This document shows, in pieces, positions 3,971 through 45,681 of a DNA stretch of 64,000 nt. The position numbers and the translations under genes were made by a program. The notes under the pieces were generated by a model. That model was not told the origin of the DNA. It saw only the letters and a program-made list of their open reading frames with translations, and did no database searches. Numbering within the stretch: the first letter of the stretch is position 1; every line of letters begins with the position of its first letter. Source of the stretch: Bugula neritina (taxonomy: Eukaryota > Animalia > Bryozoa); contig OZ037770.1 of the NCBI GenBank assembly GCA_964035545.1, positions 6,086,729-6,150,728 of the forward strand, read 5' to 3'.

Positions 3971-4108
3971 CTTGTGCCAGCTAACTCAGTTAGAGAAACT
4001 AGACATAAGAGAAAGTCCTCTCAACACAGTACCAAAAGTTGTATCATCACTCACATCACTCAAAGAGTTGTGTATGAAGGACTGTAGATTATCTACTCTA
4101 CCAGAGAG
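3971..4108 (+). CDS. LRR cassette exon 1: [45 protein letters not shown]
   Basis: tacag| acceptor, |gtttgc donor, 138 bp, phase 2-2. Confidence 0.9.

Positions 4109-45681: not shown

Follow-up and report, generated by a model that had tools for sequence, protein, structure and literature searches.

Analysis of a 64,000-nt stretch of the genome of the bryozoan Bugula neritina (GenBank assembly GCA_964035545.1, contig OZ037770.1, positions 6,086,729 to 6,150,728; hereafter the window) revealed a locus on the plus strand (3971-45681) in which leucine-rich repeats (LRRs), a Roc-COR tandem and a caspase fold appear to be joined. Taken together, the evidence described below favors a single gene of a lineage-expanded bryozoan LRR-Roc-COR-caspase family, whose copy in the window is likely a non-catalytic sensor or regulator; we assign this reading a probability of roughly 0.6. 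All searches were performed exon by exon with single-exon queries, and the ratios of nonsynonymous to synonymous change (dN/dS) given here are sums of per-exon counts. The locus lies in an AT-rich host region (about 31% G+C outside the mobile elements of the window) and comprises 20 phase-compatible exons without internal stops, spread over 42 kb (Table 1). These exons had been proposed in an initial annotation made from the sequence alone, and every one of them was recovered with the same coordinates and both ends reproduced. Based on arithmetic on these coordinates, the joined exons amount to 4783 nt or 1593 codons with all phases in agreement, arranged as 12 two-LRR cassettes, a 2-kb exon for three terminal LRRs and Roc-COR, two linker exons, and five caspase exons. 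The LRR solenoid totals 27 repeats (12 x 2 in the cassettes and three terminal ones). The 64-kb window yielded neither a start codon nor a 5' exon, and tblastn with full-length proteins of Watersipora subatra resulted in no match upstream of 3971, where bases 1-3970 contain nothing but debris of transposons, AT-rich stretches, and intron-like repeats. At the other end, the region from 46 to 64 kb of the window revealed neither further cassettes nor a second copy of the gene.

Table 1. Features of the LRR-Roc-COR-caspase locus and of the mobile elements in its introns (window coordinates)
Feature	Position	Strand	Remarks
LRR cassette exon 1	3971..4108	+	two LRRs, 138 nt; open frame, AG acceptor, GT donor
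LRR cassette exon 2	4376..4513	+	open frame, AG/GT
LRR cassette exon 3	12254..12391	+	open frame, AG/GT
LRR cassette exon 4	12696..12833	+	open frame, AG/GT
LRR cassette exon 5	13083..13220	+	open frame, AG/GT
LRR cassette exon 6	14427..14564	+	open frame; GC in place of GT donor (reads gcttgt)
LRR cassette exon 7	14835..14972	+	open frame, AG/GT
LRR cassette exon 8	15594..15731	+	open frame, AG/GT
LRR cassette exon 9	18410..18547	+	Polinton-like insertion begins 52 nt 3' of exon
LRR cassette exon 10	33491..33628	+	open frame, AG/GT
LRR cassette exon 11	34251..34388	+	open frame, AG/GT
LRR cassette exon 12	35320..35457	+	exon end TG, not AG
Large exon: three terminal LRRs, Roc GTPase, COR-A, COR-B, Cys/His cluster	40657..42659	+	Pfam, profile, AlphaFold/Foldseek
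Roc motifs	P-loop ~40967-40993; G3 ~41129-41143; G4 ~41336-41347	+	
Linker exon L1	42902..42994	+	93 nt; equal acceptor, first bases and length in paralog L001
Linker exon L2	43247..43401	+	acidic; conserved in L001, L083, L085, L086
Caspase exon C1 (p20 start, S1 Arg)	43652..43822	+	Pfam Peptidase_C14 5e-9; 74-84% identity to paralogs
Caspase exon C2	44255..44477	+	His codon 44336-44338; pentapeptide EASSG 44462-44476
Caspase exon C3 (inter-subunit linker, p10 start)	44675..44902	+	
Caspase exon C4 (p10, second S1 Arg)	45117..45220	+	Pfam, alignment, paralogs
Caspase exon C5	45532..45681	+	ends in stop TAA 45679-45681
Ty3/gypsy-type retroelement, degraded, intron 2	5546-10370		protease, reverse transcriptase, RNase H, integrase; 58% G+C in 31% G+C host region
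Polinton/Maverick-like virus-like element, young, intron after cassette 9	18599-33242		14,644 bp
Double-jelly-roll capsid gene (Polinton-like element)	26898-28112	-	Pfam 2e-56
Integrase with chromo and phospholipase A2-like parts (Polinton-like element)	29452-30816	-	
A32-type packaging ATPase (Polinton-like element)	30829-31590	+	
Reverse-transcriptase fragment, last LRR intron	37627-39300	-	

Repeat search followed by alignment detected 12 copies of a unit of about 200 nt with a 138-nt exon between AG and GT as its core, and a relaxed tblastn search returned the same 12 copies and none extra in the window. All of them are open in one shared frame, carry 1 nt before and 2 nt after whole codons, and encode two 23-residue LRRs each, which agrees with the minimum of 24 cassette LRRs claimed initially. 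Acceptors are AG in all 12 cassettes and donors are GT, with the exception of a GC after exon 14427-14564. Since the cassette phase is symmetric, splicing of any subset of cassettes would be permitted, as in brown-algal ROCO genes (PMC3341825, PMC11378527). Block duplications within the array reach 91-93% identity (e.g., 11370-11669 vs. 13698-13997) and therefore point to recent growth of the array.

For the analysis of selection, the x positions of the LxxLxLxxN/CxL motif were fixed in advance. Across the 12 cassettes, the 12 codons at x positions revealed a dN of 0.50 and a dS of 0.16 (dN/dS of 3.0), while the other 33 scaffold codons showed a dN of 0.08 and a dS of 0.37 (dN/dS of 0.22), values that derive from few codons and from pairs that are not independent. 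None of 300 random sets of 12 codons reached the dN observed at the x positions. The p-distance between cassettes was 0.28 for intron and 0.18 for exon sequence. This pattern is consistent with diversifying change on the concave, ligand-facing surface of the LRRs and fits the variable sensor postulated in the initial annotation. Long dinucleotide-type microsatellites are located just 5' of or between cassette exons (3784-4005, 18162-18387, and 35769-36400) and may favor unequal crossing-over in the array.

The large exon enters in phase with the cassettes behind a CAG acceptor (40654-40656) and ends at a donor reading CAT/GTAAGT at 42660, 52 nt 5' of the read-through stop at 42712. Queried against Pfam, it matched Roc with 31.4 bits (cut-off 27), while COR-A alone was weak (16 bits, under the cut-off). 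A profile of 40 family sequences aligned as one continuous match, from the end of the LRRs across Roc and COR, with positions 530-922 of LRRK1 and 1247-1611 of LRRK2. The AlphaFold model of the exon had a predicted local distance difference test score (pLDDT) of 89.5 and a predicted template modeling (TM) score (pTM) of 0.88, and its best Foldseek matches were LRRK1, the LRR-Roc-COR structure of C. tepidum (6hlu), LRRK2, and the COR-only structure 3dpt, with TM-scores of 0.60-0.64 on the target. The residues of G1 (G104-K110), G3 (D158, G160, G161), and G4 (T227, H228, D230) are present and invariant across the 40-sequence alignment, i.e., the P-loop, DxxGQ, and THxD motifs of the family are kept in the window copy. 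Thus, with a Roc domain bearing nucleotide-binding motifs and a COR domain directly after it, both as predicted from sequence and model, the protein belongs to the ROCO proteins, and the intact G1/G3/G4 motifs and the COR region named in the initial annotation were both confirmed. Behind COR-B (residues 613-655 of the exon, ~42494-42622), a Cys/His cluster (C613, H615, C616, and C655) is invariant or nearly so among 40 family members; it may represent a putative zinc site, which would be unexpected from known ROCO structures.

Relatives and evidence for a single gene

The initial annotation had assumed one polypeptide and proposed a search for paralogs, and LRR-Roc-COR-Peptidase_C14 relatives were indeed identified in Watersipora, amphioxus, and loci derived from B. 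neritina. Comparison of the Roc-COR exon with 1.8 billion representatives resulted in 115 matches below 1e-30, most of them single-exon open reading frame (ORF) calls. The longer gene models among these matches combined LRRs, Roc/COR, and Peptidase_C14 and included at least 10 RefSeq proteins of Watersipora subatra, whose full-length models were co-linear with the exons of the window in tblastn. At least 10 further proteins of this architecture were found in three Branchiostoma species, with some of those from B. floridae present in UniProt. The closest relatives, with Roc-COR exons 57-76% identical to that of the window, were located on contigs of two JGI metagenome samples with the scaffold prefix AY690838, the accession under which the mitochondrial genome of Bugula neritina is deposited (PMC2678162). 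Over the Roc-COR exon, the identity was 52-66% in the loci L001 and L082-L086, with further proteins from these samples reaching 76%. At the nucleotide level, only exons and a dispersed repeat matched between the B. neritina contigs and the window (about 73-80%).

All five contigs with enough flanking sequence lead from LRR cassettes via the Roc-COR exon to the caspase exons, and linker exon L2 was found in four of them. In paralog L001, whose introns cannot be aligned with those of the window, the donor of the Roc-COR exon is placed at the homologous base and L2 shows about 80% identity. Nucleotide similarity to all paralogs ends within about 10 nt of the splice sites (40645 and 42668 for the Roc-COR exon). 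Furthermore, four unrelated metagenome contigs harbored a Roc-COR exon 5' of a C2-like exon, and locus L057 encodes COR-B, the linker, and the start of the caspase in one uninterrupted frame of 402 codons (3-1208). L057 (JGI Ga0314668) represents a gene poor in introns or else a contig derived from a transcript; most of the remaining caspase was found there in a second ORF (1342-2184). Thus, co-linear full-length homologs, conserved splice sites and linkers, and the single ORF of L057 support the prediction that LRRs, Roc-COR, and the caspase fold are encoded in one gene. One might instead divide the locus into an LRR-Roc-COR gene ending at the stop at 42712 and a stand-alone caspase-like gene starting from the in-frame Met at 43661, since the Roc-COR ORF has its own stop and an in-frame ATG lies three codons into exon C1. 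The shared donor position in L001, the conservation of both L1 and L2 between introns that cannot be aligned, the fused RefSeq models in two phyla, and an ORF in L057 that spans the junction make such a division highly improbable.

A search of a limited library yielded no paper describing this ROCO-plus-caspase architecture, in line with the initial view that it is uncharacterized in animals, although with at least 10 proteins each in Watersipora and amphioxus it is by no means unique to this locus. The family is known only from automatic predictions named "MFHAS1 homolog", "SHOC-2", or "uncharacterized" and represents ROCO proteins with a new output domain. Regarding the metagenomes, a scan with the single exon C2 produced no match, while an alignment-based scan found relatives. 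Dozens of C2-like caspase exons with QACAG or QACSG were seen in L002-L081 (ENA assemblies ERZ1740050-72), indicating that caspases of this type form a large family in a further host genome.

The caspase domain and its active site

Downstream of the linker, whose acidic character noted in the initial annotation resides in exon L2, the per-exon Pfam search revealed Peptidase_C14 matches in three exons (profile positions 1-49, 59-130, and 173-208), and C5 was aligned to the caspase C-terminal motif. PDB matches of the caspase exons were CED-3, caspase-8, and caspase-3/6/7. Judged from these alignments, the p20/p10 caspase fold is complete, as initially described, but the catalytic Cys expected of a full caspase is absent. 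The pentapeptide reads EASSG, with Ser (AGC, 44468-44470) at the position of the nucleophile and Glu instead of Gln. Of the His-Cys dyad of C14A caspases (SHG ... QACxG), the His is kept (THG) and the Cys is not.

Among the approximately 94 relatives that were read, Cys was kept in all, and Ser was private to the window copy. QAC[S/G]G was found in all 10 Watersipora homologs and QACRG in both amphioxus proteins read. Of 80 metagenome relatives, detected with search patterns in which the active-site pentapeptide was not included, 78 were readable at the nucleophile site and all 78 had Cys. The four close Bugula-type paralogs displayed EVCSG, ETCSG, or HACSG, with Glu for Gln common to three of them and the window copy. 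The best PDB match of exon C2, chain 4m9r of CED-3, also has Ser at this site. An exchange of Cys for Ser is a standard inactivating mutation of caspases. Since the nucleophile Cys is replaced, the window copy most likely acts without proteolysis, as a sensor or regulator and not as a death effector. The role as an effector of death or inflammation assumed in the initial annotation is therefore unlikely for this copy.

Compared with the paralogs, exons C1, C2, and C4 revealed pairwise dN/dS values of 0.11-0.16 and a value of about 0.12 on the window branch; by this measure, the caspase domain is under purifying selection. Concerning the S1 pocket, where Arg/Gln/Arg stands for Asp specificity, alignment alone places both Arg residues in the window copy, together with the change from Gln to Glu. 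This Glu (44462-44464) occurs throughout the Bugula-type subfamily, and the second S1 Arg (45122-45124 in the window) is Ile in two of the three close paralogs L083, L085, and L086. Therefore, catalytic members of the Bugula type may not be specific for Asp.

Retention of the His and of both S1 Arg residues, constraint on the domain, and Cys in all relatives would also be expected from an active ROCO-caspase, in which the Ser codon stems from faulty sequencing or assembly or represents a rare allele (AGC is one base away from TGC) or in which Ser itself serves as the nucleophile. However, the sequence showed no sign of an error at the Ser codon, caspases with Ser for Cys are in use as inactive mutants, and 4m9r likewise has Ser at this site; we thus regard an active enzyme as improbable. 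The window copy could, with somewhat more justification but still rather unlikely, be a young pseudogene or an unexpressed relic that lost its nucleophile, whose introns were swollen by mobile elements and whose 5' end was disrupted by transposon debris. While the Ser, the one GC donor, the insertions of a retroelement, a Polinton-like element, and a reverse-transcriptase fragment, the debris at 1-2100, and the failure to find a start codon in the window would all suit a relic, each of the 20 exons is open with usable splice sites, the caspase exons show a dN/dS of about 0.12, and every insertion is intronic.

The reading as a constrained, probably non-catalytic family member has to be weighed against several further points. 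The gene model is a prediction from genomic sequence, and neither its start codon nor its 5' exon could be located in the window. With a dS to the paralogs near saturation (about 1), a recent loss of constraint would be invisible, and the Ser codon is only one base from a Cys codon, so that an assembly error is possible. One cassette donor is a weak GC (exon 14427-14564), and the 14.6-kb element lies only 52 nt from the donor of cassette exon 9. Among three isoforms of one Watersipora ROCO-caspase gene (XP_067941711-13; P0193 / P0156 / P0194), no skipping of LRR cassettes was seen; these isoforms differ in a 28-residue linker segment, and one is without p10. Finally, both the role as regulator or decoy and the role in immunity are analogies.

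Comparison with known systems and possible function

Predicted Watersipora subatra proteins (e.g., XP_067947674.1 and XP_067948342.1) display the same domain order as the window copy, with identities of 29-37% for Roc-COR and 28-41% for exon C2, but in these automatic models the pentapeptide is still QAC[S/G]G and the number of LRRs is lower (about 9-16). The Bugula neritina-associated loci L001 and L082-L086 follow a plan like that of the window (cassettes, 2-kb Roc-COR exon, L2, and C1-C5) and differ in the Cys (E[V/T]CSG; HACSG in L082), in cassettes of 47-49 residues, and in fewer cassette copies seen. With amphioxus (XP_019627981.1; C3ZI91_BRAFL, C3XQ16_BRAFL), the same architecture with several paralogs appears in a deuterostome, where the pentapeptide is the canonical QACRG and identities are about 14-22% for Roc-COR and about 26% for C2.

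The core of LRRs, Roc, and COR, including the G motifs and the COR fold, is shared with MFHAS1/MASL1, LRRK1, LRRK2, and C. tepidum Roco. In contrast to the LRRK proteins, the window protein has no kinase, and a caspase fold takes the place of kinase and WD40, while MFHAS1 is without an output domain. As MFHAS1 is defined as LRR-Roc-COR without a further catalytic domain, the C-terminal caspase fold sets the window protein apart from it; moreover, MFHAS1 is stated in a review to be confined to deuterostomes (PMC4104024). ROCO proteins fused to Death, CARD, or TIR domains have been described for Trichoplax (PMC4104024) and Aplysia (PMC9334734), but these are adaptor domains, whereas the window protein carries a caspase fold.

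The precedent of brown-algal LRR-ROCO genes with shuffling LRR exons, cited in the initial annotation, proved to be real (PMC3341825, PMC11378527). They share with the window symmetric, duplicating LRR exons and diversifying x positions, matched here by 12 tandem 138-nt exons of equal phase with faster change at the x positions. The algal exons differ in size and phase, with 72 nt, phase 2, and a single LRR each, whereas a cassette of 138 nt in the window encodes two LRRs, its whole codons being preceded by 1 nt and followed by 2 nt. In addition, the algal genes are without a caspase, and alternative splicing of LRRs is documented there. Like the window copy, cFLIP possesses a caspase fold without the nucleophile, but it has death effector domains and neither a sensor nor a GTPase. 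The likeness to NLRs (NOD-like receptors) and inflammasomes is one of logic only: no NACHT or NB-ARC domain of the STAND (signal transduction ATPases with numerous domains) NTPases was matched by Pfam in the window exons, and the predicted switch is the Roc GTPase.

COR dimerization of ROCO proteins depends on the nucleotide, and initiator caspases are activated by induced dimerization. In the mechanism we propose, which follows that of other ROCO proteins, the LRRs would recognize a ligand or partner, and the GTP cycle of Roc-COR would control COR-mediated dimerization and thereby determine how close the C-terminal caspase domains come to each other. In paralogs bearing the Cys, proteolysis would be switched on by this induced proximity. 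The window copy, without its nucleophile, would be a non-proteolytic sensor or regulator that pairs with catalytic paralogs via COR or the caspase dimer interface, similar to cFLIP and caspase-8; alternatively, it might serve as a scaffold.

Family expansion and the hypervariable LRR surface suggest, by analogy, an immune or other self/non-self sensing role. A job unrelated to pathogens, such as allorecognition and fusion control of colonies or the programmed regression of tissue in zooids, in which case the variable LRRs would mirror self/non-self or endogenous ligands, seems a lesser possibility. Sessile or colonial marine animals typically show expanded death-related domain architectures (PMC8195603), bryozoans possess a large number of family members, and nothing here links this family to pathogens, but a hypervariable LRR surface fits pathogen sensing equally well. 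More speculatively, and to be taken as a tentative proposal, bryozoans and perhaps independently amphioxus might possess a third tripartite intracellular receptor beside NLRs, composed of LRRs, Roc-COR, and a fused caspase, with cassettes mixed by alternative splicing so that recognition is diversified and nucleophile-dead copies acting on the catalytic paralogs as cFLIP-like brakes or decoys.

ROCO proteins have been studied mainly via LRRK2, and GTP control of the output domain by Roc-COR is still debated. If the proposed fusion holds, Roc-COR joined to a caspase activated by dimerization would offer a simple proteolytic read-out of the Roc-COR switch and would constitute a GTPase-based counterpart to the STAND-based logic of NLRs and the apoptosome in animal cell death and immunity. 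Members of the family are numerous in a phylum of sessile, colonial animals whose immunity is almost unstudied, and a copy that is without only the nucleophile and yet constrained is a candidate pseudo-enzyme regulator.

Mobile elements in the introns

The initial annotation attributed the interruption of the gene to transposable elements. All mobile elements inside the gene were found to lie in introns, in agreement with this, but one of them is a virus-like element of the Polinton/Maverick type. The Ty3/gypsy-type element in intron 2 is fragmented into five or more overlapping ORFs; long terminal repeats were not found for it. Outside the gene, GC-richer debris at 1-2100 contains an integrase-like peptide on the minus strand without a Pfam match at 0.01.

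Apart from the genes listed in Table 1, the Polinton-like element harbors an 852-codon ORF (20442-23000, minus strand), in which no polymerase domain was recognized. The element is bounded by terminal inverted repeats of 369 nt, which are 99% complementary, and is flanked by a perfect 6-bp target duplication, CACATC (18593-18598 and 33243-33248).
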